A stretch of 64,000 bases of DNA from Rebecca billardiae RCC1528 (taxonomy: Eukaryota > Protista > Haptophyta), in the NCBI GenBank assembly GCA_965240325.2, contig OZ251230.1:806001-870000 (forward strand), given 5' to 3'. The translations under genes were made by a program, and so were the position numbers. Below the pieces are notes generated by a model. That model did no database searches, had not been told where the DNA came from, and saw nothing but the letters and a program-made list of their open reading frames with translations. Of this stretch, positions 11,982 to 56,623 are shown one piece after another (position 1 is the stretch's first letter; each line of letters begins with the position of its first letter).

Positions 11982-14900
11982 ATGGCTGATGGCGTGGACG
12001 CGTCCCCGCTCGCGGAGCTCGCCAAGCTGTGGGGGAAAGGCGACGTGGCGGCGCTGCTCGAGGCGAGCGAGGTCAACTTTAATGGCAACGCGGCTGTCTC
12101 CCAGGGCGTGCCGTGGCAGGGCGTGCTCGAGCTGCTCCTCAGGTCCACACGCCTTGAGAAACTCCGCCTCGGGTGTGCGCAGAGCAGTGGGGCGGGCAGG
12201 TGGCGGCGCCACGTGGCGCGTGCAGACGGAGGCGCATGGGCACACAATGTCGTGCATGTGGCTGGCCCATCGCCACGTGTCAGCGCCGCTCCGGGTGCCG
12301 CGACACCGCCGCCGCGTACGCCGCACGCGGTGCTCTCAGCAGCACGTGCGCGCGAGCACACAGGCGGTGCACGCGCGGAGATGCGTGCGCGGGGGGGGGC
12401 GTGAGCTTGCGGCGCGCGCGTGGATGCTGCATCGCGTGTGCCATCGCACACGCCGCTCAGCCGCGCCCCGCCCCGCGACCTCCCCTGCGCGCAGTCAGAC
12501 CGGCGTGGGTGACGAGGGTGCCACGCAGCTCGGCGCCGCCCTCGCGTCGGGCAAGACGCGCCTGCGGGAGCTGTACCTCCAGTGAGCGCTGGGGTGGGCA
12601 CTCGGCGCGGCACGCGGTGCGCGGACGGTGGGCGGCGGGGGAGGAGGGTGAGTGGCGTGCGTTGTCACGGGCATCGATGCGCACGAGCCCGGGCTGCCGC
12701 GCACGCCCCGCGCCGAGCGCCGTGCCCCCGCCGCCGCGCGCACAGCACGCGGCGGCGGCGGCGGCGCGCACACGCGAGCGCGCGCGCATCGGCGCACGCG
12801 CGCCGATGCGTGCGCGCGAGACGGGCGGGCGGGAGCTTGCGGCGCGCGCATGGATGCTACATCGCGTGCGCCATCGCACACGCCGCTCAGCCGCGCCCGC
12901 CCCGCGCCCTCCCCTGCGCGCAGGTGCACCGGCGTGGGTGACGAGGGTGCCACGCAGCTCGGCGCCGCCCTCGCGTCGGGCAAGACGCGCCTGCGGGTGC
13001 TGGACCTCTAGTGAGCGCTGGGGTGGGCACTCGGCGCGGCACGCGGTGCGTGGACGGGGGGCGGCGGGGAAGCAGGCTGGGTGGCGTGCATCGTCACGGG
13101 CATCGATGCGCACGAGCCCGGGCTACCACGCGCGCGCCGCGCCGAGCGCCGCGTCGCCGCCGCTGCTCGCGCCGCGTGCTGCGGCAGCTGCGCGCACACA
13201 CGAGCGCACGCATCGGCGCACGCGCGCCGATGCGTGCGCGCGTGACGGGGTCGCGGGCGCTCGAGGCGCGCGTATGCATGCTGCATCGCATGCGCCATCG
13301 CACACGCCGCTCAGCCGCGCCCCGCCCCGCGCCCTTCCCTGCGCGCAGTTACTGCCGCGGCGTGGGTGACGAGGGTGCCACGCAGCTCGGCGCCGCCCTC
13401 GCGTCGGGCAAGACGCGCCTGCGGTGGCTGAGCCTCTTGTGAGCGCTGGGGTGGGCACTCGGCGCGGCGCGCGGCGCGTGGACGGTGGGCGGCGGGGGAG
13501 GAGGCTGGGTGGCGCGCATTGTCACGGGCATCGCTGCGCACGAGCCCGGGCCGCCACACGCGCACCTCGCCGAGCGCTGCGCCGCAGCCACCGCGCGCGC
13601 CGCACGCTGCGGCAGCGGCGCGCACAAGCGAGCGCGCGCGCATCGGCACACGCGCGCCGATGCGTGTGCGCGTGACGGGCGGGCGGGAGCTTGCGGCGCG
13701 CGCATGGACGCTACATCGCGTGCGCCATCGCACACGCCGCTCAGCCGCGCCCCGCGCCGCGCCCTCCCCTGCGCGCAGTCACACCGGCGTGGGTGACGAG
13801 GGTGCCACGCAGCTCGGCGCCGCCCTCGCGTCGGGCAAGACGCGCCTGCGGGAGCTGAACCTCGGGTGAGCGCTGGGGTGGGCACTCGGCGCGGCGCGCG
13901 GCGCGTGGACGGTGGGCGGCGGGGGAGGAGTCTGGTTGGCGTGCGTTGTCACGGGCATCGATGCGCACGAGCCCGGGCTGCCGCGCGCGCCCCGCGCCGA
14001 GCGCCGTGCCCCCGCCGCCGAGCGCGCCGCACGCGGCGGCGGCGGCGGCGCGCACATGCGAGCGCGCGCACATCGGCACACGCGCGCCGATGCGTGTGCG
14101 CGTGACGGGCGGGCGGGAGCTTGCGGCGCGCGCATGGATGCTACATCGCGTGCGCCATCGCACATGCCGCTCAGTCTCGCCCCGCCCCGCGCCCTCCCCT
14201 GCGCGCAGGGACACCCGCGTGGGTGACGAGGGTGCCACGCAGCTCGGCGCCGCCCTCGCGTCGGGCAAGACGCGCCTGCGGGTGCTGAACCTCTTGTGAG
14301 CGCTGGGGTGGGCACTCGGCGCGGCGCGCGGCGCGCGGACGGTGGGCGGCGGGGGAGGAGGGTGGGTGGCGCGCATTGCCACGGGCATCGATGCGCACGA
14401 GCCCGGGCTATCACGCGCGCGCCACACCGAGCTCCGCGCCACCGCTGCCGTGCGGGCCGCACGCGGCGGCAGCTGCGCGCACACGCGAGCGCGCGCGCAT
14501 AGGCGCACGCGCGCCGATGCGTGCGCGCGTGACGGGGGCGCGGAAGCTTGCGGCGCGCGCGTGCATGCTGCATCGCGTGCGCCCTCGCACACGCCGCTCA
14601 GCCGCGCCCCGCCCCGCGCCCTCCCCTGCGCGCAGTTGCACCGGCGTGGGTGACGAGGGTGCCACACAGCTCGGCGCCGCCCTCGCGTGGGGCAAGACGC
14701 GCCTGCGGGAGCTGAACCTCGGGTGAGCGCTGGGGTGGGCACTCGGCGCGGCGCGCGGCGCGTGGACGGTGGGCGGCGGGGGAGGAGTCTGGTTGGCGTG
14801 CGTTGTCACGGGCATCGATGCGCACGAGCTCGGGCCGCCGCGCGCGCGCCGCGCCGAGCGCCGCGCCGCCGCCGCCGCGCGCGCCGCGCGCTGCGGCAGC

Positions 14901-17900
14901 GGCGGCGCGCACACGCGAGCGCGCGCGCATAGGCGCACGCGCGCCGATGCGTGCGCGCGTGTCGGGGGCGCGGGCGCTCGAGGCGCGCGCGTGCATGCTG
15001 CATCACGTGCGCCATTGCACACGCCGCTCAGCCGTGCCCCGCCCCGCGCCCTCCCCTGCGCGCAGTACCATGCACACGTCTAACAGGGTCCGGGCACGCG
15101 TCAATCAGGCCGTGAAGGCGAACAGTGCGCGGCTGCAGCAGGAGCCACCCAGGTGCAAGCGGCGGGGGGGGGCACAACGCGACGCGCCCGTGCACACGCG
15201 GGGCGGGCGGGAGAGGGAGCAGTGGGTTGCGATGATCGGCCGCCAGACGCGCGGCGCACCCCTGCTATGCCACCGCACGCCCCTGGCACGCGCTTCGCCA
15301 CCGCTCACGTGCGCGCCTCGCCCACCACCTGCCTGCGCGCGCAGTGATGACTCTGCTGATGACTCTGCTGATGACTCTGCTGACGACTCTGCTGACGATT
15401 CGGCCTCTGGCGACGAGGCAGAGGCAGCGGAGGAGGCGCAGGCCGCGCTCGACGCGCTCGCAGAGCGTCAGCGCGCGGCGGACGCCGCGCGCGCCGCGCT
15501 CGGCGCCGAGCAGGCGGCCATCCGCGCCGCCCTCGGCCGCGGCGGCGTGGACGAGGCGCGGCTGGCGCGGCGCGACGCGCGCCGTGCCGAGCTGGGCGCC
15601 GCGCTCGAGGCGCTCGGCGCGTGCGCGCTCGACGTGCACGCGGACTCGCAGCAGCGCGCGGCGGCGCTGCGTCGCGAGGCGCGCGCGTTGCGCGCGGCGC
15701 TCGAGCGCGCGGGCACGCCAGAGCAGCCGCGCGAGCCAGCCGGCGACGGGTCCGCTCCGGCGCCCCTGCCGCCGCCTCGCGCGCTCGAGCGCGCGGTGGG
15801 CGCGGCGGTGCGCGCGCACGACGCCGCAGCGCCGCCCTCCGGCGCGGGCGGTGGCGGCGCGGCGCTCGCTGCCGCGTGGGCGGAGGTCGCGCGCCAGGCC
15901 ATCGCCCTCGCGGCGCGCGGCACGTACGCCGACGCGGACGACGGCGCGTGCGCCTCGGCGTGGGCGCTCGCCATGCCCGGCCTGTGCGACGCGGCGCGCG
16001 CTGCCGCCACAAGCGGCGGTGGCCTGACCGACGCGGCGCGCGCGCGCGCGGCCGCGTGCGACGAGCTCGCCGCAGTGGCCGAGCGCGCGCGCACGATCGC
16101 GCGCGAGGCGGAGGCGGAGGCGCGCGAGCTCCGCGCGCTGCCGTCCGCCGAGCGCGCGCACGGCGCGCACGAGCTGCGCGAGCGCGAGGAGGCGTGCAGG
16201 GCGGCTGCGCGCGCGCTGCGCCTCGCGCGCCGCGCTCTAGAAGATGCTCAGGACGACGGCGGCGACGTGGACGGCGCACAGCGCGCGCTCGTCGACGCGC
16301 AGCGGCGCGCGCAGCGCACGCAGCGCGCGCGCGAGCGCTCGCTCGACCGCCTGTACGAGCTGGCGGGCGGGCCGTTCCCCGAGCTGCCCGCCATGCTGCC
16401 CGAGGCGTTCGACGGCGCGGGCGCGCTGCCCGCGGGCGCGCGGCCCGCGTGGCTGCACGGCCGCACGCTCGCGCAGTACGAGCCGTGCGAGTGGCCCGAC
16501 GGCGCGGCGCCCGGCCGCGCGCGGCACGAGGTGCTGCTGCGCACGTTCGCGGGCGAGCGCGTCGTGCTCAAGGTGTACCCGCTGGCGAGCGACACGGAGC
16601 GCCGGCTGCTCGGGCGCGAGGTGGAGTTTGCGCGGGCGCACGCGCACCCACACCTCGCGCGCGTGGCGGGCGTCTTTGTCGACCAGCCGCGCGGCGCGCG
16701 CTGCGCGCTCGTGCAGACGCCGCTCTACTCGGGCGGCACGCTGCGCGGCTGGCTCGAGCGCGACGAGGCGGCGGCGGGCTTGCCGCCCGAGGCGGTGCGC
16801 GGTGGCGCGGCGGGCGCGCGTATGCTCGAGCCGGCGCACGCGCGCGTCGCGCCCGTGCGCGTGCGCGCGCTGCGGCAGCTGCTGGGCGCGCTCGCGCACC
16901 TGCACGCGCGCGGCGCGGTGCACGGCGACGTGAAGCTCGAGAACGCGTTCGTGCAGCTGCCGGGCGACGACGCGGCGGAGCGGCCGCTCGGCGCGGCCGA
17001 GCCGTTCCGCGTGCTGCTCGGCGACTTTGACCTGGCGCGCGTGGAGGAGGCGCTGCAGCACGCGGCTGGCGGCGGCGTGCCGAGCGCGACGACGCGCGCG
17101 GGCGCGGGCACCGAGGGCCACATGGCGCCCGAGCTGCTCGTGCCCGGCGCGCGCGCGAGCGCGGCGTCGGACGTGTTCGCGTTCGGCGTGTGCGTGCTGC
17201 GCGCGCTCGCGGCCGACGAGCCGACGCGCGCCGCGCTCGTGGGCTCGGTGCAGGGCGCGCGCGCCGCGGCGGCTGCGCTGGGCGAGCCGCTCGTCGTGGC
17301 CGCGCTGTCGGACGCGCCGGGCGCGCGGCCGAGCGCGGCGCAGCTCGAGGGCGCGGCGCTGTGGGCGGCGAGCGACGAGGCGCTGCGCGCGGCCGAGGCC
17401 GAGCGCGAGGCGGCGGCCGCGAGCGCGCGCGCCGCGCTGCGCACGTGCGCGGTGTGCTTGGACGAGGAGGTGCCGCCGGACGAGTGCGCCGAGTGCGCGG
17501 GCGGCGGGCACGCGGTGTGCTCGCTCTGCCTCTCCATGCACGTGCAGGTGTGCGCGCAGCCCGACGGCGGCGGCGGCGCGGCGCTCGACGCGGACGGGCG
17601 CGTGCCGTGCGTCGAGGCGGGCAGCGGCTGCGCGCACGCGTACCTGGACGGCGAGCTCGCGCGCCGCACGACCGCCGCGGCGTTCGGCGCGTACTGGCGC
17701 GCGCGCGAGCAGCACGCCGAGGCGCGCGGCGAGGAGCGCGCGGCCGAGCGCGCGCGCGCCGAGGCCTTGCGCCTCGCTGCGCTCAGCGCGGCCGAGCGCG
17801 TGCGCGAGCAGCGGCGCGCACACATCATCGATCATATCCTCACGCTCAAGTGCCCGCGCTGCGGCATGGCGTTCGCCGAGTGGCTCGACGGCGCGCGCGG

Positions 17901-18210
17901 CTTCGACGGCTGCTGCGCGCTGCAGTGCGCGCGCGATCGGTGCGGCTGCCACTTCTGCGCCTACTGCCTCGCCGACTGCGGCGCCGACGCGCACCCGCAC
18001 GTGCGCGGCTGCGAGCACGGCAACGGCACGTACTTTGCGCAGCGCGGCGAGTTTGAGGCGGCGCAGCGCGCGCGGCGCGAGCGCGCGCTGCGCCGCTACC
18101 TCGCCGACGAGGCGGGCGCGGACGGCGCGGCGCGCCAAGCGATCGTCGCGTCCGTCGAGCGCGAGCTGCGCGACCTCCGCATCGACCCAGACGCACTCGC
18201 GCGCGAGTGA
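11982..18210 (+). CDS. LRR-kinase-RBR-like E3 protein, copy A (6 LRR exons, ~1222 aa). Exons 11982-12172, 12495-12581, 12924-13010, 13349-13438, 13779-13865, 14209-14295, 14636-14722, 15066-15152, 15345-18210
   Basis: All introns are GT..CAG and phase 2; the spliced frame is open from ATG to TGA. RI-type LRR unit xxGVGDEGATQLGAALASGKTRLRxLxL. Kinase motifs VVLK, REVE, HGDVKLEN, DFD, GTEGHMAPE, SDVFAFG. RING1 CAVC..C..H..CxxC..C..C and Rcat CPRC..FDGCCALQC..CGCHFCAYC. Confidence 0.9.
12495..15065 (+). repeat. Exon+intron tandem array A, six ~430-bp units
   Basis: Each unit is an 87/90-nt LRR exon plus a ~340-nt intron that starts GTGAGCGCTGGGGTGGGCACTC and ends in ...CCCTGCGCGCAG. Confidence 0.95.
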
Positions 18211-18489
18211 CCGGTGGGCCCCGGGGGCGTCGGCTGCGCGCAGTGTCAGGCGCGGGCGGGCACGTGGGCACGAGCTGAGCGCGATGATGCTCGGCGGGGG
18301 CCACGTGCGCGGATGCACCGCCACGCTGAACACGCTGGTGCCGAATCGCACGTGGCGGCTGGGGGCGCTCACCCAGCTCCGCGCCGTCGAGAGCTCCGAG
18401 CCGGAGCTACGCCGGCCGCTGAGGGGCGTCGGGGAGAGGGACGAGACGGAGGCGCGCGCCGCGACGATGCGCGGCTCGGTGGCTACGCG

Positions 18490-20115: not shown

Positions 20116-20315
20116 TACGCGGCCGTCCACCGCCGCGGGAGATTGGGCAGCCATCAAGACGACTCGCGCTCGTCACGAAAAGCTGAGACGAATAAATGAA
20201 AGGCGCCAAAGGCGCTTTCAGCTTCGCATCCGGACCAGAAAGCCACCGGAACTCCGGAAGGCATCGGCCATCGCCGCTCGCTCTCGGAGGCCGCCCAGGC
20301 GCCCAGTGCGACAGC

Positions 20316-23300
20316 ATGGCTGATGGCGTGGACGCGTCCCCGCTCGCGGAGCTCGCCAAGCTGTGGGGGAAAGGCGACGTGGCGGCGCTGCTCGAGGCGA
20401 GCGAGGTCAGCCCTCATGACAACGCGGTCTCCCAGGGCGTGCCGTGGCAGGGCGTGCTCGAGCTGCTCCTCACGTCCACACGCCTCGAGGAACTCCGCCT
20501 CAGGTGTGCGCAGAGCGGTGGGGCGGGCAGGTGGCGGCGGCACGTGGCGCGTGCAGACGGAGGCGCATGGGCACACACTGCCCTGCATGTGGCTGGCCCA
20601 TCGGCACGTGTCAGCGCCGCTCCGGGCGCCGCGCCGCCGCCGCCGCGTACGCCGCACGCGGTGCTCTCAGCAGCACGTGAGCGCGAGCACACAGGCGGTG
20701 CACGCGCACCGATGCGTGCGCGCGTGACGGGCGGACGGGAGCTTGAGGCGCGCGCATGCATGCTGCATCGCGTACGCCATCGCACACGCCGCTCAGCCGC
20801 GCCCCGCCGCGCGCCCTCCCCTGCGCGCAGTTTCACCGGCGTGGGTGACGAGGGTGCCACGCAGCTCGGCGCCGCCCTCGCGTCGGGCAAGACGCGCCTG
20901 CGGGTGCTGGACCTCGGGTGAGCGCTGGGGTGGGCACTCGGCGCGGCGCGCGGCGCGTGGACCGTGGGCGGCGGGGGAGGAGGGTGGGTGGCGTGCGTTG
21001 TCACGGGCATCGATGCGCACGAGCCCGGGCTGCTGCGCGCGCCCCGCGCCGAGCGCGGCGCCGCCACCACCGCGCACGCCGCACGCTGCGGCAGCGGCGG
21101 CGCGCACACGCGAGCGCGCGCGCATCGGCGCACGCGCGCCGATGCGTGCGCGCGTGACGGGGGCGCGGGAGCTTGCGGCGCGCGCATGCATGCTGCATCG
21201 CGTGCGCCATCGCACACGCTGCTCAGCTGCGCCCCGCCCCGCGCCCTCCCCTGCGCGCAGTTTCACCGGCGTGGGTGACGAGGGTGCCACGCAGCTCGGC
21301 GCCGCCCTCGCGTCGGGCAAGACGCGCCTGCGGGAGCTGAACCTCTAGTGAGCGCTGGGGTGGGCACTCGGCGCGGCGCGCGGCGCGTGGACGGTGGGTG
21401 GCGGGGGAGGAGGGTGGGTGGCTTGCGTTGTCGTGGGCATCGATGCGCGCGAGCCCGGGCTGCCGCGCGCGCGCCGCGCCGAGCGCCGCGCCGCCGCGGC
21501 CGCGCGCGCCGCACGCTGCGGCGGCGGCGCGCACACGCGAGCGCGCGCGCGTCGGCGCACGCGCGCCGATGCGTGCGCGCGTGACGGGGGCGCGGAAGCT
21601 TGCGGCGCGCGTATGCATGCTGCATCACGTGCGCCATCGCACACGCCGCTCAGCCGCGCCCCGCCCCGCGCCCTCCCCTGCGCGCAGTGGCTGTGACGGC
21701 GTGGGTGACGAGGGTGCCACGCAGCTCGGCGCCGCCCTCGCGTCGGGCAAGACGCGCCTGCGGAAGCTGAACCTCGAGTGAGCGCTGGGGTGGGCACTCG
21801 GCGCGGCGCGCGGCGCGTGGGCGGTGGCTGGCGGGGGAGGATGCTGAGTGGCGCGCATTGTCACGGGCATCATTGCGCACGAGCCCGCCCCGCGCGCGCC
21901 GCGCCGAGCGCGGCGCCGCCACCACCGCGCACGCCGCACGCTGCGGCAGTGGCGGCGCGCACACGCGAGCGCGCGCGCATCGGCACACGCGCGCCGATGC
22001 GTGTGCGCGTGACGGGCGGGCGGAAGCTTGCGGCGCGCGCATGCATGCTGCATCACGCGCGCCGTCGCACACGCCGCTCAACCGCGCCCCGCCCCGCGCC
22101 CTCCCCTGCGCGCAGTGGCTGTGACGGCGTGGGTGACGAGGGTGCCACGCAGCTCGGCGCCGCCCTCGCGTCGGGCAAGACGCGCCTGCGGAAGCTGAAC
22201 CTCGAGTGAGCGCTGGGGTGGGCACTCGGCGCGGCGCGCGGCGCGTGGACGGTGGGCGGCGGGGGAGGAGGGTGGGCGGCGCGCATCGTCACGGGCATCG
22301 ATGCGCGCGAGGCCGGGCCACCACGCGCGCGCCGCGCCGAGCGCCGCGCCGCCGCCGCCGCGCGCGCCGCGCGCTGCGGCAGCGGCGGCGCGCACACGCG
22401 AGCGCGCGCGCGCCGATGCGTGCGCGCGTGACGGAGGCGCGGGCGCTCGAGGCGCGCGCATGCATGCTGCATCACGTGCGCCATCGCATACGCCGCTCAG
22501 CCGCGCCCCGCCCCGCGCCCTCCCCTGCGCGCAGTGGCACCCGCGTGGGTGACGAGGGTGCCACGCAGCTCGGCGCCGCCCTCGCGTCGGGCAAGACGCG
22601 CCTGCGGGAGCTGAACCTCGAGTGAGCGCTGGGGTGGGCACTCGGCGCGGCGCGCGGCGCGTGGACGGTGGGCGGCGGGGGAGGAGGGTGGGTGGCGCGC
22701 ATCGTCACGGGCATCGATGTGCACGAGCCCGGGCTACCGCGCGCGCCCCGCGCCGAGCGCCGCCCCGCCGCCGCCGCGCGCGCCGCAGGCTGCGGCAGCG
22801 GCGGCGCGCACACGCGAGCGCGCGCGCATCGGCGCACGCGCGCCGATGCGTGCGCGCGTGACGGGGGCGCGGGAATGTGCGGCGCGCGCTTATGCATGCT
22901 GCATCGCGTGCGCCATCGCACACGCCGCTCAGTCGCGCCCCGCCCCGCGCCCTCCCCTGCGCGCAGTCGCACCGGCGTGGGTGACGAGGGTGCCACGCAG
23001 CTCGGCGCCGCCCTCGCGTCGGGCAAGACGCGCCTGCGGGAGCTGAACCTCCGGTGAGCGCTGGGGTGGGCACTCCGCGCGGCGCGCGGTGCGTGGACGG
23101 TGGGTGGCGGGGGAGGAGGGTGGGTGGCGCGCATTGTCACGGGCATCGATGCGCACGAGCCCGGGCTACCACGCGCGCGCCTCGCCGAGCGCCGCGCAGC
23201 CGCCGCGCCGCGCGCCGCACGCTGCGGCAGCGGCGGCGTGCACACGCGAGCGCGCGCGCATCGGCGCACGCGCGCCGATGCGTGCGCGCGTGACGGGGTC

Positions 23301-26300
23301 GCGGGCGCTCGAGGCGCGCGCATGCATGCTGCATCGCGTGCGCCATCGCACACGCTGCTCAGCTGCGCCCCGCCCCGCGCCCTCCCCTGCGCGCAGTTTC
23401 ACCGGCGTGGGTGACGAGGGTGCCACGCAGCTCGGCGCCGCCCTCGCGTCGGGCAAGACGCGCCTGCGGGAGCTGAACCTCTAGTGAGCGCTGGGGTGGG
23501 CACTCGGCGCGGCGCGCGGCGCGTGGACGGTGGGTGGCGGGGGAGGAGGGTGGGTGGCTTGCGTTGTCGTGGGCATCGATGCGCGCGAGCCCGGGCTGCC
23601 GCGCGCGCGCCGCGCCGAGCGCCGCGCCGCCGCGGCCGCGCGCGCCGCACGCTGCGGCGGCGGCGCGCACACGCGAGCGCGCGCGCATCGGCACACGCGC
23701 GCCGATGCGTGCGCGCGTGACGGGGGCGCGGGAGCTTGCGGCGCGCGCGTGCATGCTGCATCGCGTGCGCCATCGCACACGCCGCTCAGCCGCGCCCCGC
23801 CCCGCGCCCTCCCCTGCGTGCAGTGGCTGTGACGGCGTGGGTGGTGAGGTCCGGGCACGTGTGGATGAGGCCGTGGAGGCGAACAAGGCGCGGCTGCAGC
23901 AGGAGCCACCCAGGTGCAAGCGGTGGGGGGGCACAACGCGACGCGCCCGTGCACACGCGGGGCACGCGGGAAAGGGAGCAGCGGTCGGCGGTGATTGCCC
24001 GCCCGACGCGCGGCGCACCCCTGCTCTGCCACCGCACGCCCCTGGCACGCGCTTCGCCACCGCTCACGTGCGCGCCTCGCCCACCGCCTGCCTGCGCGTG
24101 CAGTGACGACTCTGCTGATGACTCTGCTGATGACTCTGCTGATGACTCGGCCTCTGGTGACGAGGCGGAGGCAGCGGAGGAGGCGGAAGCCGCGCTCGAC
24201 GCGCTCGCAGAGCGTCAACGCGCTGCGGACGCCGCGCGCGCCGCGCTCGGCGCCGAGCAGGCGGCCATCCGCGCCGCCCTCGGCCGCGGCGGCGTGGACG
24301 AGGCGCGGCTGGCGCGGCGCGACGCGCGCCGTGCCGAGCTGGGCGCCGCGCTCGAGGCGCTCGGCGCGTGCGCGCTCGACGCGCACGCGGACTCGCAGCA
24401 GCGCGCGGCGGCGCTGCGTCGCGAGGCGCGCGCGTTGCGCGCGGCGCTCGAGCGCGCGGGCACGCCAGAGCAGCCGCGCGCGCCAGCGGGCGACGGGTCC
24501 GCTCCGGCGCCCCTGCCGCCGTGTCGCGCGCTCGAGCGCGCGGTGGGCGCGGCGGTGCGCGCGCACGACGCCGCAGCGCCGCCCTCCGGCGCGGGCGCGG
24601 GCGGCGCGGCGCTCGCTGCCGCGTGGGCGGAGGTCGCGCGCCAGGCCATCGCCCTCGCGGCGCGCGGCACGTACGCCGACGCGGACGACGGCGCGTGCGC
24701 CTCGGCGTGGGCGCTCGCCATGCCCGGCCTGTGCGACGCGGCGCGCGCTGCCGCCACAAGCGGCGGTGGCCTGACCGACGCGGCGCGCGCGCGCGCGGCC
24801 GCGTGCGACGAGCACGCCGCAGTGGCCGAGCGCGCGCGCACGCTCGCGCGCGAGGCGGAGGCGGAGGCGCGCGAGCTCCGCGCGCTGCCGTCCGCCGAGC
24901 GCGCGCACGGCGCGCACGAGCTGCGCGAGCGCGAGGAGGCGTGCAGGGCGGCGGCGCGCGCGCTGCGTCTCGCGCGCCACGCTTTAGAAAACGCGCAGGA
25001 CGACGGCGGCGACGTGGACGGCGCACAGCGCGCGCTCGTCGACGCGCAGCGGCGCGCGCAGCGCACGCAGCGCGCGCGCGAGCGCTCGCTCGACCGTCTG
25101 TACGAGCTGGCGGGCGGGCCGTTCCCCGAGCTGCCCGCCATGCTGCCCGAGGCGTTCGACGGCGCGGGCGCGCTGCCCGCGGGCGCGCGGCCCGCGTGGC
25201 TGCACGGCCGCACGCTCGCGCAGTACGAGCCGTGCGAGTGGCCCGACGGCGCGGCGCCCGGCCGCGCGCGGCACGAGGTGCTGCTGCGCGCGTTCGCGGG
25301 CGAGCGCGTCGTGCTCAAGGTGTACCCGCTGGCGAGCGACACGGAGCGCCGGCTGCTCGGGCGCGAGGTGGAGTTTGCGCGGGCGCACGCGCACCCACAC
25401 CTCGCGCGCGTGGCGGGCGTCTTTGTCGACGAGCCGCGCGGCGCGCGCTGCGCGCTCGTGCAGACGCCGCTCTACTCGGGCGGCACGCTGCGCGGCTGGC
25501 TCGAGCGTGACGAGGCGACTGCCTTGCCGCCCGAGGCGGTGCGCGGCGGCGCGCCGGGCGCGCGAATGCTCGAGCCGGCGCACGCGCGCGTCGCGCCCGT
25601 GCGCGTGCGCGCGCTGCGGCAGCTGCTGGGCGCGCTCGCGCACCTGCACGCGCGCGGCGCGGTGCACGGCGACGTGAAGCTCGAGAACGCGTTCGTGCAG
25701 CTGCCGGGCGACGACGCGGCCGAGCGGCCGCTCGGCGCGGCCGAGCCGTTCCGCGTGCTGCTCGGCGACTTTGACCTGGCGCGCGTGGAGGAGGCGCTGC
25801 AGCACGCGGCTGGCGGCGGCGTGCCGAGCGCGACGACGCGCGCGGGCGCGGGCACCGAGGGCCACATGGCGCCCGAGCTGCTCGTGCCCGGCGCGCGCGC
25901 GAGCGCGGCGTCGGACGTGTTCGCGTTCGGCGTGTGCGTGCTGCGCGCGCTCGCGGCCGACGAGCCGACGCGCGCCGCGCTCGTGGGCTCGGTGCAGGGC
26001 GCGCGCGCCGCGGCGGCTGCGCTGGGCGAGCCGCTCGTCGTGGCCGCGCTGGCGGACGCGCCGGGCGCGCGGCCGAGCGCGGCGCAGCTCGAGGGCGCGG
26101 CGCTGTGGGCGGCAAGCGACGAGGCGCTGCGCGCGGCCGAGGCCGAGCGCGAGGCGGCGGCCGCGAGCGCGCGCGCCGCGCTGCGCACGTGCGCGGTGTG
26201 CTTGGACGAGGAGGTGCCGCCGGACGAGTGCGCCGAGTGCGCGGGCGGCGGGCACGCGGTGTGCTCGCTCTGCCTCTCCACGCACGTGCAGCTGTGCGCG

Positions 26301-26954
26301 CAGCCCGACGGCGGCGGCGGCGCGGCGCTCGACGCGGACGGGCGCGTGCCGTGCGTCGAGGCGGGCAGCGGCTGCGCACACGCGTACCTGGACGGCGAGC
26401 TCGCGCGCCGCACGACCGCCGCCGCGTTCGGCGCGTACTGGCGCGCGCGCGAGCAGCACGCCGAGGCGCGCGGCGAGGAGCGCGCGGCCGAGCGCGCGCG
26501 CGCCGAGGCCGAGCGCCTCGCGGCGCTCAGCGCGGCCGAGCGCGTGCGCGAGCAGCGGCGCGCGCACATCATCGATCATATCCTCACGCTCAAGTGCCCG
26601 CGCTGCGGCATGGCGTTTGCCGAGTGGCTCGACGGCGCGCGCGGCTTCGACGGCTGCTGCGCGCTGCAGTGCGCGCGCGATCGGTGCGGCTGCCACTTCT
26701 GCGCCTACTGCCTCGCCGACTGCGGCGCCGACGCGCACCCGCACGTGCGCGGCTGCGAGCACGGCAACGGCACGTACTTTGCGCAGCGCGGCGAGTTTGA
26801 GGCGGCGCAGCGCGCGCGGCGCGAGCGCGCGCTGCGCCGCTACCTCGCCGACGAGGCGGGCGCGGACGGCGCGGCGCGCCAAGCGATCGTCGCGTCCGTC
26901 GAGCGCGAGCTGCGCGACCTCCGCATCGACCCAGACGCACTCGCGCGCGAGTGA
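20316..26954 (+). CDS. LRR-kinase-RBR-like E3 protein, copy B (7 LRR exons, ~1247 aa). Exons 20316-20503, 20831-20917, 21261-21347, 21688-21777, 22116-22205, 22535-22621, 22967-23053, 23397-23483, 23824-23913, 24104-26954
   Basis: Same architecture and motifs as copy A. All introns are phase 2 and the spliced frame is open. Confidence 0.9.
20831..23823 (+). repeat. Exon+intron tandem array B, seven ~430-bp units
   Basis: Same unit as array A. Confidence 0.95.
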
Positions 26955-27239
26955 CCGGTGGGCCCCGGGGGCGTCGGCTGCGCGCAGTGTCAGGCGCTGG
27001 CGGGCACGTGGGCACGAGCTGAGCGCGATGATGCTCTGCAGGGGCCACGTGTGCGCATGCACCGCCACGCTGAACACGCTGGTGGCGAATCGCGCGTGGC
27101 GGCTGGGGGCGCTGACCCAGCTCCGCGCCGTCGGGAGCTCCGAGCCGGAGCTACGCCGGCCGCTGAGGGGCCTCGGGGAGAGGGATGAGACGGGGGCGCG
27201 CGCTGCACTGGCGCGTCGGCTGGCAGCAGCTCAGCCGCG

Positions 27240-28003
27240 CGCTCCAGTGAACGGCGCACGGACGGTGAACGAGTTGGCGACCTTCTCCTTCGTGCTGACG
27301 AAATCGCTCAGTCAGCTTGCCGAGGAGGATCCCCGCCCACTTGTGCGCGTACCCGCTCGACGCGTCCACGGCGACGGCGGCGTCGGCGAGCTCGATCCCC
27401 GATCGGATCAGCTCCTCGCGCCGCGCCGCGTCATCAGCCGCCTGCTCGGACAGCTCGTAGCGCGCGCGCGCACGCCGCCAGAGGAGCTCGACGTCGTCAG
27501 CCGCGGGTGCAGCGGAGGCCTCCTGCTCGAGCAGTGCGTACAGAGCTTCGTATTCGCCCGTGGCGCGCATCTCGTCCGCGCGCGAGAAGCGCGCTGGGCT
27601 CTCTTCGAGCGGCGGTGCCATCTTGATCTGCCCACTCGGCCTCTCGAGGCTGGTCGCACCGTCCCGCCCCCGGTGGCACGGGTGAGGCCGAGCCGTCCAG
27701 TGCAGCCCGCGCTGCAGCCTCGCCCGGTGCGGTAGCATCGGGTTTGCGGCGGCGATAGAGCCGCAGCGGCGAAAGGCGCGAGAGAAGCCGACGTACGCGG
27801 CCAGGCCGCGCTGAAGCTTCCTCCTCCCGTTCCTCCTCGCAGGACGAATCAACCATCATGGCAACACACGTGCGTGCAGGCGAAGGCGGCAGGAGCTTGC
27901 ATCCGGGCGCGAGGGTCGGAGATGAGCCTGGCCAGTGCGCGCGAGGAATGTGGGCACCACCAAAGGGCACGGCGGCGAGCACTAGCACGACGGCCAACCG
28001 CAT
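27240..28003 (-). pseudogene. RMDN/RMD-1 5' fragment, second copy, frameshifted and truncated
   Basis: MAPPLEESPARFSRADEMRATGEYEALYALLEQ...DDVELLWRRARARYELS...YAHKWAGILLGKL. A 4-bp TCAG duplication at ~27308-27315 shifts the frame. Confidence 0.7.
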
Positions 28004-28180
28004 TACGCGGCCGTCCACCGCCGCGGGAGATTGGGCAGCCGTCAAGACCGAAGACGACTCGCGCTCGTCACGAAAAGCTGAGACGAAATGAAAGGCGCTT
28101 CGCATCCGGACCAGCAACCACCGGAACTCCGGAAGGCATGACGGCCATCGCCGCTCTCGGAGGCCGCCCAGCGCGAGAGC

Positions 28181-31100
28181 ATGGCTGATGGCGTGGACGC
28201 GTCCCCGCTCGCGGAGCTCGCGGAGCTGTGGGGGCAAGGCGACGTGGCGGCGCTGCTCGAGGCGAGCGAGGTTCGCCTTCATGACGACGCGGTCTCCCAG
28301 GGCGTGCCGTGGCAGGGCGTGCTCGAGCTGCTCCTCACGTCCACACGCCTCGAGAAACTCAACCTCGGGTGTGCGCAGAGCAGTGGGGCGGGCAGGTGGC
28401 GGCGCCACGTGGCGCGTGCAGACAGATGCGCATGGGCACACACTGCCCTGCATGTGGCTGGCCCCGCGGCGCGTGTCAGCGCCGCTCCGGGTGCCGCGCC
28501 ACCGCCGCCGCGTACGCCACACGCGGTGCTCACGGCGGCACGTGAGCGCGAGCACACAGGCGGTGCACGCGCGGAGATGCGTGCGCGCGTGACGGGCGGG
28601 CGGGAGCTTGAGGCGCGCGCATGCATGCTGCATCGCGTGCACAATCGCACACGCCGCTCAGCCGCGCCCCGCCCCGCGCCCTCCCCTGCGCGCAGTTTCA
28701 CCGGCGTGGGTGACGAGGGTGCCACGCAGCTCGGCGCTGCCCTCGCGTCGGGCAAGACGCGCCTGCGGGGGCTGGACCTCACGTGAGCGCTGGGGTGGGC
28801 ACTCGGCGCGGCGTGCGGCGCGTGGACGGTGGGCGGCGGGGGAGGAGGGTGGGTGGCGTGCGTTGTCACGGGCATCGATGCGCGCGAGCCCGGGCTGCCG
28901 CGCGCGCCCCGCGCCGAGCGCCGTGCCCCCGCCGCCGCGCGCGCCGCACGCGGCGGCGGCGGCGGCGCGCACACGCGAGCGCGCGCGCATCGGCGCACGC
29001 GCGCCGATGCGTGCGCGCGTGACGGGGGCGCGGAAGCTTGCGGCGCGCGCGTGCATGCTGCATTGCGTGCGCCATCGCACACGCCGCTCAGCTGCGCCCC
29101 GCCCCGTGCCCTCCCCTGCGTGCAGTGCCTGCCACGGCGTGGGTGACGAGGGTGCCACGCAGCTCGGCGCCGCCCTCGCGTCGGGCAAGACGCGCCTGCG
29201 GGTGCTGAACCTCTGGTGAGCGCTGGGGTGGGCACTCGGCGCGGCGCGCGGCGCGTGGACGGTGGGTGGCGGGGGAGTAGGGTGGGTGCCGCGCATTGTC
29301 ACGGGCATCGATGCGCGCGAGCCCGGGCCACCACGCGCGCGCCGCGCCGAGCGCCGCGCCGCCGCCGCGCCGCGCGCTGCACGCTGCGGCAGCGGCGGCG
29401 CGCACACGCGAGCGCGCGCGCATCGGCACACGCGCGCCGATGCGTGCGCGCGTGACGGGGGCGCGGAAGCTTGCGGCGCGCGCGTGCATGCTGCATCGCG
29501 TGCGCCATCGCACACGCCGCTCAGCTGCGCCCCGCCCCGTGCCCTCCCCTGCGTGCAGTGCCTGCCACGGCGTGGGTGACGAGGGTGCCACGCAGCTCGG
29601 CGCCGCCCTCGCGTCGGGCAAGACGCGCCTGCGGGAGCTGCACCTCTAGTGAGCGCTGGGGTGGGCACTCGGCGCGGCGCGCGGCGCGTGGACGGTGGGC
29701 GGCGGGGGAGGAGGCTGGGTGGCGCGCATTGTCACGGGCATCGATGCGCACGAGCCCGGGCTATCGCGCGCGCCCCGCGCCGAGCGCCGTGCCCCCGCCG
29801 CCGCGCGCGCCGCACGCGGCGGCGGCGGCGGCGCGCACACGCGAGCGCGCGCGCATCGGCACACGCGCGCCGATGCGTGCGCGCGTGACGGGGGCGCGGG
29901 AGCTTGCGGCGCGCGCATGCATGCTGCATCGCGTGCGCCATCGCACACGCCGCTCAGCCGCGCCCCGCCCCGCGCCCTCCCCTGCGCGCAGTCAGACCGG
30001 CGTGGGTGACGAGGGTGCCACGCAGCTCGGCGCCGCCCTCGCGTCGGGCAAGACGCGCCTGCGGGAGCTGCACCTCGGGTGAGCGCTGGGGTGGGCACTC
30101 GGCGCGGCGCGCGGCGCGTGGGCGGTGGGCGGCGGGGGAGGAGGGTGGGTGGCGTGCGTTGTCACGGGCATCGATGCGCGCGAGCCCGGGCTGCCGCGCG
30201 CGCCCCGCGCCGAGCGCCGTGCCCCCGCCGCCGCGCGCGCCGCACGCGGCGGCGGCGGCGGCGCGCACACGCGAGCGCGCGCGCATCGGCGCACGCGCGC
30301 CGATGCGTGCGCGCGTGACGGGGGCGCGGAAGCTTGCGGCGCGCGCGTGCATGCTGCATCGCGTGCGCCATCGCACACGCCGCTCAGCCGCGCCCCGCCC
30401 CGCGCCCTCCCCTGCGCGCAGTCAGACCGGCGTGGGTGACGAGGGTGCCACGCAGCTCGGCGCCGCCCTCGCGTCGGGCAAGACGCGCCTGCGGGAGCTG
30501 CACCTCGGGTGAGCGCTGGGGTGGGCACTCGGCGCGGCGCGCGGCGCGTGGGCGGTGGGCGGCGGGGGAGGAGGTTGGGTGACGCGCATTGTCACGGGCA
30601 TCGATGCGCGCGAGCCCGGGCTGCCGCGCGCGCGCCGCGCCGAGCGCCGCGCCGCCGCCGCCGCGCGCGCCGCACGCTGCGGCAGCGGCGGCGCGCACAC
30701 GCGAGCGCGCGCGCATCGGCACACGCGCGCCGATGCGTGCGCGCGTGACGTGGGCGCGGGCGCTCTAGGCTAGGCGCGCGCATGCATGATGCATCGCGTG
30801 CGCCGTCGCACATGCTGCTCAGCCGCGCCCCGCCCCGCGCCCTCCCCTGCGCGCAGTAACACCCGCGTGGGTGACGAGGGTGCCACGCAGCTCGGCGCCG
30901 CCCTCGCGTCGGGCAAGACGCGCCTGCGGGGGCTGAACCTCCGGTGAGCGCTGGGGTGGGCACTCGGCGCGGCGCGCGGCGCGTGGACGGTGGGCGGCGG
31001 GGGAGGAGGCGGGGTGGCGCGCATCGTCACGGGCATCGATGCGCACGAGCTCGGGCCGCCGCGCGCGCGCTGCGCCGAGCGCCGCGCCGCAGCCGCCGCG

Positions 31101-34100
31101 CGCGCTGCACGCTGCGGCGGCGGTGGCGCGCACACGCGAGCGCGCGCGCATTGGCGCACGCGCGCCGATGCGTGCGCGCGTGACGGGGGCGCGGGAGCTT
31201 GCGGCGCGCGCATGCATGCTGCATGGCGTGCGCCATCGCACACGCCGCTCAGCCGCGCCCCGCCCCGCGCCCTCCCCTGCACGCAGCAACGCCAGCGTGG
31301 GTGACAAGGGTGCCACGCAGCTCGGCGCCGCCCTCGCGTCGGGCAAGACGCGCCTGCGGGTGCTGTCCCTCGAGTGAGCGCTGGGGTGGGCACTCGGCGC
31401 GGCGCGCGGCGCGTGGACGGTGGGCGGCCGGGGATGAGGCTGCGTGCTGCACAGCGTCACGGGCATCGATGCGCGCGAGGCCGGGCTACCGCGCGCGCCC
31501 CGCGCCGAGCGCCGCGCCCCCGCCGCCGCGCGCGCCGCCTGCGGCGGCGGCGGCGGCGCGCACACGCGAGCGCGCGCGCATCGGCACACGCGCGCCGATG
31601 CGTGTGCGCGTGACGGGCGGGCGGGAGCTTGCGGCGCGCGCATGGATGCTACATCGCGTGCGCCATGGCACACGCCGCTCAGCCGCGCCCCGCCCCGCGC
31701 CCTCCCCTGCGCGCAGTTACTGCCGCGGCGTGGGTGACGAGGGTGCCACGCAGCTCGGCGCCGCCCTCGCGTCGGGCAAGACGCGCCTGCGGGTGCTGGA
31801 CCTCTGGTGAGCGCTGGGGTGGGCACTCGGCGCGGCGCGCGGTGCGTGGACGGTGGGCGGCGGGGGAGGAGGGTGGGTGCTGCGCATCGTTACGGGCATC
31901 GATGCGCACGAGTCAGGGCTGCCGCGTGCGCCCCGCGCCGAGCGCCGCGCCGCCACCACCGCGCGCGCCGCACGCTGCGGCAGCGGCGGCGCGCACACGC
32001 GAGCGCGCGCGCATCGGCACACGCGCGCCGATGCGTGCGCGCGTGACGGGGGCGCGGGAGCATGCGGCGTGCCCATGCATGCTGTATCACGCGCGCCATC
32101 GCGCACGCCGCTTAGCCGCGCCCCGCCCCCGCGCCCTCCCTTGCGCGCAGGGGATGCCGCGGCGTGGGTGACGAGTGTGCCACGCAGCTCGGCGCCGCCC
32201 TCGCGTCGGGCAAGACGCGCCTGCGGGAGCTGATCCTCGAGTGAGCGCTGGGGTGGGCCCTCGGCGCGGCGCGTGGTGCGTGGATGTTGGACGGCGGGGG
32301 AGGAGGGTGGGTGACGCGCATCGTCACGGGCATCGATGCGCTCGAGCGCGGGCCGCCGCGCGCGCGCCACACCGAGCGGCGTGCCGCCGCTGCCGAGCGC
32401 GCCACACGCTGTGGCAGCGGCGCGCACACGCGAGCGCACGCATCGGCGCACGCGCGCCGATGCGTGCGCGCGTGACGGGGGCGCGGGAGCTTGCGGCGCG
32501 CGCGTGCATGCTGCATCGCGTGCGCCATCGCACACGCCGCTCAGCCGCGTCTGGCCCCGCGCCCTCCCGTGCGCGCAGTGGCACCGGCGTGGGTGACGAG
32601 GGTGCCACGCAGCTCGGCGCCGCCCTCGCGTCGGGCAAGACGCGCCTGCGGGAGCTGAACCTCCGGTGAGCGCTGGGGTGGGCCCTCGGCGCGGCGCGCG
32701 GCGCGTGGACGGTGGGCGGCGGGGGAGGAGGCTGGGTGGCTCTCATGGTCACGGGCATCGATGCGCACGAGCCCGGGCTACCACGCGCGCGCCTCGCCGA
32801 GCGCCGTGCCCCCGCCGCCGCGTGCGCCGCACGCGGCGGCGGCGGCGGCGCGCACACGCGAGCGCGCGCGCATCGGCGCACGCGCCGATGCGTGCGCATG
32901 TGACAGGGTTGCGGGCACATGCACGCGCGCATGCATGCTGTATCGCGTGCGCCATCGCACACGCCGTTCAGCCGCGCCCCGCCCCTCGCCCTCCCCCGCA
33001 CGCAGTCTCACCGACACGTCTGGCGAGGTCCGGGCACGCGTCAATCAGGCCGTGAAGGCGAACAGGGCGCGGCTGGAGCAGGAGCCACCCAGGTGCAAGC
33101 GGCGGGGGGGCACAACGCGACGCGCCCGTGCACGCGCGGGGCGGGCGGGAAAGGGGGCAGCGGTCGGCACTGATTGCCCGCCCGATGAGCGGCGCACCCC
33201 GGCTCTGCCACCGCACACCTGTGGCACGCACTTTGCCGCCGCTCACGTGCGCGCCTCGCCCACCGCCTGCCTGCGCGTGCAGTGACGACTCTGCTGATGA
33301 CTCTGCTGATGACTCTGCTGACGACTCTGCTGACGACTCGGCCTCTGGCGACGAGGCGGGGGCGGAGGAGGCGGAGGGGGTGGAGGAGGCGGAGACCGCG
33401 CTCGACGCGCTCGCGGAGCGGCGGCGCGCTGCGGACGCCGCGCGCGCCGCGCTCGGCGCCGAGCAGGCGGCCATCCGCGCCGCCCTCGGCCGCGGCGGCG
33501 TGGACGAGGCGCGGCTGGCGCGGCGCGACGCGCGCCGTGCCGAGCTGGGCGCCGCGCTCGAGGCGCTCGGCGCGTGCGCGCTCGACGCGCACGCGGACTC
33601 GCAGCAGCGCGCGGCGGCGCTGCGTCGCGAGGCGCGCGCGTTGCGCGCGGCGCTCGAGCGCGCGGGCACGCCAGAGCAGCCGCGCGCGCCAGCCGGCGAC
33701 GGGTCCGCTCCGGCGCCCCTGCCGCCGTCTCGCGCGCTCGAGCGCGCGGTGGGCGCGGCGGTGCGCGCGCACGACGCCGCAGCGCCGCCCTCCGGCGCGG
33801 GCGGTGGCGGCGCGGCGCTCGCTGCCGCGTGGGTGGAGGTCGCGCGCCAGGCCATCGCCCTCGCGGCGCGCGGCACGTACGCCGACGCGGACGACGGCGC
33901 GTGCGCCTCGGCGTGGGCGCTCGCCATGCCCGGCCTGTGCGACGCGGCGCGCGCTGCCGCCACAAGCGGCGGTGGCCTGACCGACGCAGCGCGCGCGCGC
34001 GCGGCCGCGTGCGACGAGCTCGCCGCAGTGGCCGAGCGCGCGCGCACGATCGCGCGCGAGGCGGAGGCGGAGGCGCGCGAGCTCCGCGCGCTGCCGTCCG

Positions 34101-56583: not shown

Positions 56584-56623
<40 letters not shown>

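Follow-up and report, generated by a model that had tools for sequence, protein, structure and literature searches.

Three tandem LRR-kinase genes and their repeat exons

Within a 64,000-nucleotide stretch of the very GC-rich DNA of the haptophyte alga Rebecca billardiae RCC1528 (the window), we identified three neighbouring sensor-like genes, A, B and C (Table 1), which are three of the eight tandem paralogues of one cluster (C13:746977-838665 of the assembly). The cluster contains 74 LRR exons on the + strand only, and its paralogues carry between 4 and 15 repeats; 23 of these exons lie in the window (6 in gene A, 7 in gene B and 10 in gene C). The collinear models are all open, encoding 1222, 1247 and 1537 aa for A, B and C, respectively, and the usual stop position in gene C would be at about 36198. 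Judging from their sequences, the encoded proteins would combine an array of ribonuclease inhibitor (RI)-type LRRs with a coiled-coil-like stretch, a protein kinase and a Cys-rich RING/IBR-like tail. These proteins look cytosolic and may act as cytosolic sensors. The kinase domain of the large exon is detected by Pfam. The sole reverse transcriptase match in the window (42-1316) resembles a retroelement fragment.

Each LRR sits on its own near-identical exon of constant length, both in the window and across the cluster. All 23 window exons measure 87 or 90 nt, with a layout of 1 + 3n + 2 bases and phase 2 introns throughout, and each forms, together with an intron of about 343 nt, a repeat unit of about 430 bp. 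In every unit, the intron falls after the second base of the codon at position 7 of the LxxLxLxx strand. Given that the phase is the same at both exon ends, any exon skip, deletion or duplication keeps the frame. The repeats span 29-30 residues and follow the pattern LxxLxLxx(N/C/T)x(L/V)GDxGA...L...L, which places them in the RI-type class of 28-29 residues. When a single LRR exon was compared with the PDB using phmmer, only ribonuclease inhibitor was matched (1dfj_I, E = 0.0018), with the exon end aligning to the RI strand. Pfam returned no match for single LRR exons, as expected for a 28-aa piece cut in mid-repeat, and the exon core gave no match in a metagenome scan.

The introns are copies of one another with identical splice sites, the donors being the same in 73 of the 74 cluster LRR exons and the acceptors in 61. 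The donor, GTGAGC followed by a run of G, is strong and invariant, a feature that would let the two exon-end bases vary, although C is depleted at exon position -1 (1/74, compared with 11/74 for the second base in head codon 1; p = 0.0045). The intron fold is unremarkable (z = -1.18). A search of 144 kb for spare, silent or inverted cassettes, allowing up to 8 mismatches, gave neither minus-strand matches to the core nor extra plus-strand ones beyond the arrays.

Table 1. Genes and exons in the window. For LRR exons, remarks give length and first base / last two bases; + within a codon marks the splice junction.
Feature	Position	Strand	Remarks
Gene A	11982..18210	+	exon 1, 6 LRR exons, cap exon, large coiled-coil/kinase/Cys-rich exon
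A exon 1 (N-terminal cap)	11982..12172	+	ends with LRR-like tail and GG
A LRR exon 1	12495..12581	+	87 nt, T / CA
A LRR exon 2	12924..13010	+	87 nt, G / TA; CA+G = Q
A LRR exon 3	13349..13438	+	90 nt, T / TT; Cys-type head
A LRR exon 4	13779..13865	+	87 nt, T / GG
A LRR exon 5	14209..14295	+	87 nt, G / TT
A LRR exon 6	14636..14722	+	87 nt, T / GG
A C-terminal cap exon	15066..15152	+	87 nt, end AG
A large exon	15345..18210	+	acidic repeat, Ala-rich coiled-coil-like stretch, protein kinase domain, Cys-rich RING/IBR-like tail
Gene B	20316..26954	+	exon 1, 7 LRR exons, chimeric cap exon, large exon
B exon 1	20316..20503	+	end AG (AG+T = S)
B LRR exon 1	20831..20917	+	87 nt, T / GG
B LRR exon 2	21261..21347	+	87 nt, T / TA
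B LRR exon 3	21688..21777	+	90 nt, T / GA; sequence = B LRR exon 4
B LRR exon 4	22116..22205	+	90 nt, T / GA; sequence = B LRR exon 3
B LRR exon 5	22535..22621	+	87 nt, T / GA
B LRR exon 6	22967..23053	+	87 nt, T / CG
B LRR exon 7	23397..23483	+	87 nt, T / TA
B cap exon	23824..23913	+	90 nt, chimeric: LRR head fused to cap body, end AG
B large exon	24104..26954	+	kinase; RING match weak
Gene C	28181..36739	+	exon 1, 10 LRR exons, cap exon, large exon with frame-shifted end
C exon 1	28181..28368	+	end GG
C LRR exon 1	28696..28782	+	87 nt, T / AC
C LRR exon 2	29126..29215	+	90 nt, T / TG
C LRR exon 3	29559..29648	+	90 nt, T / TA; head as C LRR exon 2, tail different
C LRR exon 4	29992..30078	+	87 nt, T / GG
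C LRR exon 5	30422..30508	+	87 nt, T / GG; sequence = C LRR exon 4
C LRR exon 6	30857..30943	+	87 nt, T / CG
C LRR exon 7	31287..31373	+	87 nt, C / GA; CG+C = R
C LRR exon 8	31717..31806	+	90 nt, T / TG
C LRR exon 9	32151..32240	+	90 nt, G / GA; TG+G = W
C LRR exon 10	32579..32665	+	87 nt, T / CG
C cap exon	33006..33092	+	87 nt, end AG
C large exon	33283..36739	+	38-nt tandem duplication (35931-36006) shifts frame within last Cys-rich block

Hypervariable codons in mosaic repeat units

Variation among the repeats is confined to a small part of the exon. Nearest-neighbour units differ by 43% at nine hypervariable nucleotides, by 3.6% in the intron and by 0.2% in the rest of the exon (Fisher p = 2.5e-142). 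Likewise, pi rises from 0.003 in the 63-nt core to 0.083 in the intron, and reaches 0.57-0.71 at seven of the nine hypervariable nucleotides and 0.31-0.37 at the other two. Some pairs of units show 0-2 differences in the intron, a few of them none at all, yet differ at 6 of the 9 hypervariable sites. Mapping by the LxxLxLxx motif and the RI alignment suggests that the variable positions are concentrated on strand residues of the concave face. The third bases of x3 (G) and x5 (C) are invariant and nearly every amino acid is written by a single codon, so that essentially no synonymous change accompanies a saturating non-synonymous one. The amino-acid alphabets are restricted, with E/V/K and never D/N/H at x3, and N/D/Y/H/S/G and never K/E/Q at x5.

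The repeat units are, moreover, mosaics of past recombination on a fine scale: tail, intron halves and the head that follows show no mutual correlation (Mantel r <= 0.115), and all four gametes occur in 42% of informative intron site pairs. These observations, together with the range in repeat number, uphold over evolutionary time the earlier suggestion that tails and heads are re-paired at the DNA level. The identical LRR exons 3 and 4 of gene B lie in units that are, as wholes, just 88% alike. However, such re-pairing is not the main source of diversity: the hypervariable codons are unlinked even 3 nt apart, which indicates that diversity arises codon by codon rather than mainly by pairing whole tails with whole heads. 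Additionally, variability at the 17 fourfold-degenerate sites of the core is 26-fold lower than in the intron, and protein-level selection does not explain why these sites are frozen.

The split codon and its contribution to diversity

A preliminary description of this DNA had proposed that the most variable binding residue is assembled across the splice junction, with any tail able to join any head. Its inventory agrees with ours. At all 23 window exons a codon of the variable strand is split; they begin with T (19), G (3) or C (1); LRR exons end in CA, TA, TT, GG, GA, CG, AC or TG, and the AG ends that were also listed belong to exon 1 of gene B and the three cap exons. The residues formed at adjacent joins are Q, Y, F, G, D, R, T, C and W, with no stop among them, and the S likewise claimed comes from AG+T after exon 1 of gene B and where the caps join the kinase exon. 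The junction residue is not the most variable one, though, as its 3.30 bits across the cluster rank second to the 3.70 bits of the next exon's first full codon (2.90 vs 3.12 bits in the window alone). Nor is the lack of stops, including the absence of TA+G, more than chance would give (P ~0.6): shuffling the first bases over the junctions leaves 56% of trials stop-free for the cluster and 60% for the window.

That the residue is assembled across the junction is formally true, but the downstream exon contributes next to nothing to its identity. The first base of each exon completes the split codon, and in 68 of the 74 cluster exons it is T, so the upstream exon sets the junction residue in 63 of 66 joins and only 3 depart from the tail dinucleotide plus T. 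Free pairing of tails and heads is sound as far as the frame goes, 284 of the 287 possible in-gene skips being free of stops, but it mostly leaves the junction residue as it was, with a change in just 16 of the 287. Therefore, the junction codon itself is not a source of diversity. The stop-free skips would yield 167 strand combinations that are adjacent nowhere in the cluster.

Proposed origin of the array and comparison with other receptor systems

Setting out from the anatomy, rates, mosaic structure and fixed third base described above, we propose that the LRR array expanded through successive tandem duplications of a single ~430 bp unit, in which an ancestral intron happened to fall after the second base of the position 7 codon. 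Every copy would have inherited this split, in which case the uniform phase reflects common descent and did not evolve to create diversity. Units would then be kept near-identical by recombination or gene conversion at a sub-unit scale together with purifying selection. The codons that face the ligand, five or six in number (x3 and x5, the junction codon, and head codon 1 with the head positions after it), outpace the introns about 12-fold, and their codon-by-codon change would be due to diversifying selection. The role of selection is suggested by rate contrasts among paralogous repeats. The junction residue is set by the final two bases of the upstream exon, and the downstream exon adds a near-constant T, which leaves each tail/head pairing stop-free and its junction residue unchanged. 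Collinear constitutive splicing is the likely main product, as the open frames and uniformly strong splice sites suggest. Taken as a whole, we consider this explanation to be well favoured.

Diversification by splicing is a rather improbable alternative, in which stochastic or regulated skipping of cassette exons would give extra isoforms with new tail/head strands and other repeat numbers. The shared phase, the interchangeable splice sites of all LRR exons, the near-absence of stops and the many new strand combinations speak for it, and skipping has been reported for brown-algal (Ectocarpus ROCO) genes (PMC11378527) and human NLRP3 (PMC6642158). However, the ~343 nt introns have uniformly strong sites, with no LRR exon weakened. 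Short introns with such sites favour collinear, intron-defined splicing, and skipping would scarcely alter the junction residue in any case. Docking or selector-like unique elements are not apparent from the intron copies and their fold. With uniform splice sites, an ordinary intron fold and no spare cassettes in the 144 kb, nothing points to the Dscam-like or programmed splicing suggested earlier. Mutually exclusive splicing of the Dscam type also does not match the gene models, where the exons follow one another as repeats of a single solenoid and a model that includes all of them is open.

We find it very hard to credit that tails and heads are still being re-paired in cell lineages by DNA rearrangement, perhaps a programmed one, in the manner of lamprey VLRs or antigenic variation, with units or paralogues undergoing unequal crossover or gene conversion. 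The mosaic units, the variable repeat number and the identical neighbouring exons and chimeric cap exon of gene B would all fit such a process. Nevertheless, ordinary recombination between tandem repeats, meiotic or mitotic, leaves just such a mosaic in the course of evolution, and cassette exchange would not unlink codons 3 nt apart. Moreover, all three genes are complete in the germline and have open frames, and the 144 kb contain no silent, inverted or intronic donor cassettes, unlike the lamprey VLR and Ectocarpus ROCO loci; assembly of the V(D)J or VLR type with junctional diversity is likewise at odds with these complete genes and the prevailing T. Even less credible is a targeted mutational process, deaminase- or template-driven, acting on the strand codons in place of selection on ordinary mutations. 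It could account for unit pairs that differ at hypervariable sites and hardly at all in their introns, for the NNC/NNG codon pattern with its fixed third base, and for flanks frozen even at synonymous sites. Yet the restricted alphabets at x3 and x5 point to selection on the protein, every type of substitution occurs rather than just C-to-T or A-directed ones, and the window contains no identified dedicated machinery, its reverse transcriptase match looking like a retroelement fragment. A 12-fold rate excess is also within the range seen for positively selected sites. We would be surprised if a sizeable fraction of transcripts or cells in a clonal culture carried non-collinear LRR exon joins, within or between tandem paralogues; if they did, single cells would express differing sets of binding strands, a Dscam/VLR-like diversification in a protist built on stop-proof, T-initiated exons.

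Algal immunity is poorly understood, above all that of haptophytes against their giant viruses, and a clustered LRR-kinase-E3-like family with a near-invariant scaffold and hypervariable contact codons provides good candidates for intracellular sensors. The useful result here is a negative one: the split codon, inherited from one duplicated intron, generates no diversity, and with a near-constant T at the start of its exons the array tolerates any tail. Whether splicing or somatic change diversifies such receptors, a question previously raised for brown algae, may be asked of these genes too.

The gene design itself is already known from brown-algal ROCO genes and vertebrate NLRs. In vertebrate NOD/NLRC and NLRP genes and the ribonuclease inhibitor gene, the LRRs are of RI type, 28-29 aa long, with the exon-exon border at a constant place inside the beta-strand, and NOD/NLRC genes encode one LRR per exon; the frame-preserving modularity is described as a precondition for alternative splicing, and splicing variants of NLRP3 are documented (Hoss et al. 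2019, PMC6642158). The haptophyte genes share with this group the RI-type LRRs and the fixed border in the strand, and with NOD/NLRC genes the single LRR per exon. Unlike in vertebrate NLRs, however, the array is joined to a kinase and a Cys-rich RING/IBR-like tail without a NACHT domain, and its repeats are near-identical young duplicates with hypervariable contact codons, in a haptophyte alga. The likeness to Dscam, lamprey VLRs and V(D)J extends only to the general idea of tandem arrays of interchangeable binding-module exons or cassettes: in contrast to Dscam exon clusters, the protein here needs many repeats at once rather than one chosen exon, and in contrast to VLR and V(D)J genes, the germline copies are complete, there are no donor cassettes, and joining creates no new residue, given the fixed third base.

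Brown-algal ROCO (LRR-ROC-COR) and NB-ARC-TPR proteins are candidate immune receptors whose genes lie in tandem clusters and evolve by exon duplication and shuffling, with a few concave-face residues under positive selection and recent duplicates differing in repeat number; alternative splicing and somatic recombination have already been proposed as sources of their diversity (Zambounis et al. 2012, PMC3341825; Teng et al. 2024, PMC11378527). As in those genes, each LRR in Rebecca occupies a small, frame-preserving exon of constant length. Partner domains and lineage differ, and the inactivated and inverted LRR exons found inside introns of Ectocarpus (PMC3341825) have no counterpart in the 144 kb. 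The brown-algal exons are 72 nt long and encode 24-aa LRRs with the whole LxxLxLxxN strand inside, whereas in Rebecca the intron splits the strand.

Architecture and relatives of the LRR-kinase genes

Genes A, B and C, three tandem LRR-kinase paralogues whose structures we obtained by reading the sequence and parsing it by script, lie in a window with a GC content of 62-86% per 2 kb, within an assembly of 72 Mb in 41 contigs. They share a common layout: exon 1, whose end is an LRR-like tail, is followed by a series of LRR exons (87 or 90 nt each) with ~343-nt introns between them, a cap exon of 87/90 nt, and one large exon. The large exon encodes a protein kinase domain (Pfam Pkinase, E = 1e-14 to 5e-14) along with an acidic repeat, an Ala-rich coiled-coil-like stretch and a Cys-rich, putatively RING/IBR-like tail. 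With Tandem Repeats Finder, a 430-bp period, the length of one LRR exon plus its intron (hereafter a unit), shows up in arrays at 12365-15066 and 20614-33013. Each of the three is a complete germline gene, and joined translation with a frame check by script gave open collinear models of 1222 (A), 1247 (B) and 1537 aa (C).

Pfam gave nothing meaningful for exon 1, the cap exon or individual LRR exons. A single 28-aa exon compared with the whole PDB matched ribonuclease inhibitor (RI) and no other protein (1dfj_I, E = 0.0018), with the RI strand aligned to the last residues of the exon, which identifies the repeats as RI-type LRRs with a length of 29 or 30 residues. The RING/IBR-like label is suggested by the Cys/His pattern and a sub-threshold zf-C3HC4 match in gene B, and the Cys-rich tail had no match in the PDB. 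In gene C, the last Cys-rich block contains a 38-nt tandem duplication (35931-36006), which A and B do not carry and which shifts the frame, so that the ORF extends to 36739 past the usual stop at ~36198; possible readings are a pseudogene, a gene with a damaged tail, or an error in the assembly.

Coordinates of genes and open reading frames in the window
Feature	Position	Strand	Description
Gene A	11982-18210	+	6 LRR exons
Gene B	20316-26954	+	7 LRR exons
Gene C	28181-36739	+	10 LRR exons
Open frame with reverse transcriptase domain	42-1316	+	RVT_1, E = 8.8e-17
Spacer ORF	27154-27852	-	homologous stretches at ~18230-18730/19590-19960 and 36200-36460
Exostosin GT47 glycosyltransferase-like ORF	39395-41014	-	E = 1.6e-29
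Weak GH5 cellulase-like ORF	48560-50776	-	E = 2.9e-5
Single 2156-aa open frame with RCC1-like repeat domains	51024-57491	-	WD40_RLD, E = 3e-84; 86% GC DNA

A near-invariant 63-nt part of the LRR exon, the core, occurs in 74 copies in eight tandem genes at C13:746977-838665 (C13 being contig OZ251230.1, of which the window is 806001-870000), on the + strand throughout, with 8, 4, 11, 15, 13, 6, 7 and 10 repeats per gene along the cluster. An extra family member on another contig (C25:699600-702000) carries the same core in six LRR exons, with a longer unit (~445 bp). Since a protein word search with the whole large exon gave no relatives, Ala-rich words swamping the candidates, residues 380-900 served as query; relatives of this kinase/Cys-rich part were found in Pavlovales sp. 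CCMP2436, MMETSP and JGI data, at no more than 48% identity. The LRR array is absent from all 4 relatives examined, the matches included no protein or transcript of the same species, and the LRR fusion to the kinase/Cys-rich part thus far appears lineage-specific. The alga itself is probably a pavlovophyte. A metagenome scan with a 30-nt piece of the core gave 0 matches and hence no environmental contig carrying it.

The codon split by the introns

In each LRR exon, the first base closes a codon and the last two start the next; all introns are therefore in phase 2, interrupting the LxxLxLxx strand at position 7, here called the junction residue. The preliminary description had claimed that this is the most variable binding residue and that its assembly across the splice junction creates junctional diversity. 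The details on which that claim was built are real, and its title is overstated: all of the listed exon ends, first bases and joined residues were found in the LRR exons, cap exons and exon 1, the AG end and the residue S coming from exon 1 of gene B and the cap exons. However, the junction residue is not the most variable position, carrying 3.30 bits (14 residues) across the cluster as against 3.70 bits for the first complete codon of the following exon (head codon 1), and 2.90 as against 3.12 bits in the window alone.

Junctional diversity is refuted at the level of the codon itself. The third base of the split codon is T in 68 of the 74 exons of the cluster, G in 5 and C in 1, so that the residue equals the two-base end of the upstream exon (its tail) plus T in 63/66 joins; all six exons of the member on the second contig also start with T. 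Thus, the upstream exon writes the residue and joining adds nothing new at the split codon. Among 287 possible in-gene exon skips, only 16 would alter the junction residue, 3 of them to a stop. A pyrimidine at the third base renders all tails stop-proof, and the junction is neutral to whatever is joined, the opposite of junctional diversity. The lack of TAG at TA|G joins, which had also been pointed out, is uninformative: when the first bases are shuffled among junctions, zero stops result in 56% (cluster) and 60% (window) of trials, and stop avoidance is accordingly not significant. In addition, C occupies the last exon position in 1/74 exons, compared with 11/74 at the unconstrained second base of the head codon (p = 0.0045), and donor context narrows the junction repertoire.

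Hypervariable codons and the re-pairing of tails and heads

Across 66 aligned units, nucleotide diversity (pi) is 0.003 in the core and 0.083 in the intron overall (0.009 in its first 30 nt, 0.10 in its middle), and it reaches 0.57-0.71 at seven and 0.31-0.37 at two of nine hypervariable nucleotides, located in the variable strand codons x3 and x5, the junction dinucleotide and head codon 1. Between nearest-neighbour units, differences per site amount to 3.6% in the intron, 43% at the hypervariable nucleotides and 0.2% at other exon sites, placing the hypervariable sites 12-fold above the intron (Fisher p = 2.5e-142), and in some pairs of units the introns are identical although 6/9 hypervariable sites differ. 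The third bases are invariant, always G in x3 and always C in x5, so there is essentially zero synonymous change. Each hypervariable position has its own alphabet (E/V/K at x3; N/D/Y/H/S/G at x5), which favours protein-level selection over untargeted mutagenesis. The core is frozen even at synonymous positions: across window 12495-32665 and C13:746977-796000, its 17 fourfold-degenerate sites have a pi of 0.003 vs 0.083 in adjoining introns, making them 26 times less variable (p ~1e-5). Two GGT codons of the core persist in virtually every one of the 74 copies despite GC-rich codon usage.

The same heads (exon starts) occur with differing tails, and the same tails with differing next heads, a re-pairing that the preliminary description had predicted, by Dscam-like splicing or by reshuffling of the DNA, including crossover inside introns. 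Distances of tails, 5' intron halves, 3' intron halves and next heads are uncorrelated (Mantel r <= 0.115), all four gametes are present in 42% of informative intron site pairs, and two adjoining exons of gene B are identical while the whole units are just 88% alike; units are therefore fine mosaics. In the course of evolution, tails and heads have certainly been re-paired by sub-unit recombination or gene conversion, and the part of the proposal that invoked reshuffling of the DNA stands in this evolutionary form. However, single hypervariable codons are unlinked even at 3 nt (x3-x5, z = 0.9; x5-junction, z = 1.9; junction-next head, z = 1.2), with z dropping to ~1 or less when the recent gene-4/gene-5 duplicate is left out. 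Sub-unit recombination is neither intron-specific nor the main source of codon-level diversity. The linkage we considered between tails and next heads, or between heads and their own tails, proved to be whole-haplotype linkage from recent duplicates alone. The gene B cap exon (23824-23913), which joins an LRR-exon head, the same as in B LRR exons 3 and 4, to a cap body, is chimeric and a product of recombination.

As for splicing, donors are identical in 73/74 exons and acceptors in 61/74, a GCTCAG motif lies 40 nt 5' of the acceptor in 70/74, and none of the 74 exons is marked by weak splice sites. These features permit exon skipping without predicting it. Intron RNA structure was rejected as a guide to exon pairing, as the introns contain a local palindrome but their minimum free energy is ordinary (z = -1.18). 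Our data support evolutionary reshuffling of the kind ordinary for tandem repeats, and leave programmed splicing or somatic shuffling unsupported.

The idea of splicing and shuffling is already in the literature for another algal lineage. In brown-algal ROCO genes, each LRR sits on its own frame-preserving exon of 72 nt (Zambounis et al. 2012, PMC3341825; Teng et al. 2024, PMC11378527), and reports on these genes describe shuffled exons, alternative transcripts and positive selection acting on four concave residues, with somatic recombination hypothesised (PMC3341825, PMC11378527). Vertebrate NOD/NLRC genes likewise devote one exon to each RI-type LRR of 28 aa (Hoss et al. 2019, PMC6642158), with the exon border at a constant place in the beta-strand and a modularity regarded as a precondition for alternative splicing (PMC6642158). 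In contrast to Ectocarpus ROCO loci, which hold inverted, intronic or silent spare cassettes (PMC3341825), the haptophyte cluster has no such cassettes in the 144 kb examined. What differs here from the brown-algal and vertebrate systems is the haptophyte lineage, the split-strand RI-type repeat, the kinase and Cys-rich partner, and the unusually clean pattern.

Other elements in the window

No stretch of the window was flagged as resembling human DNA. A small ORF on the minus strand, weakly matching RMD1-3 (TPR-like; E = 0.0022, below cut-off), is present in each spacer between the paralogues. The copy between A and B is broken by an AT-richer insertion of ~850 bp (18734-19580) with 23-nt imperfect inverted ends (87% complementary), which is absent from the otherwise homologous B-C spacer and looks like a small DNA transposon or MITE. 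The open frame with a reverse transcriptase domain is probably a retroelement fragment. By eye, short inverted copies of the motif gaagatacgctagcg surround a ~200-bp stretch at ~9106-9310, with the motif appearing again, in palindromic form, 900 bp onward (10039-10060); these copies may mark a small mobile element.
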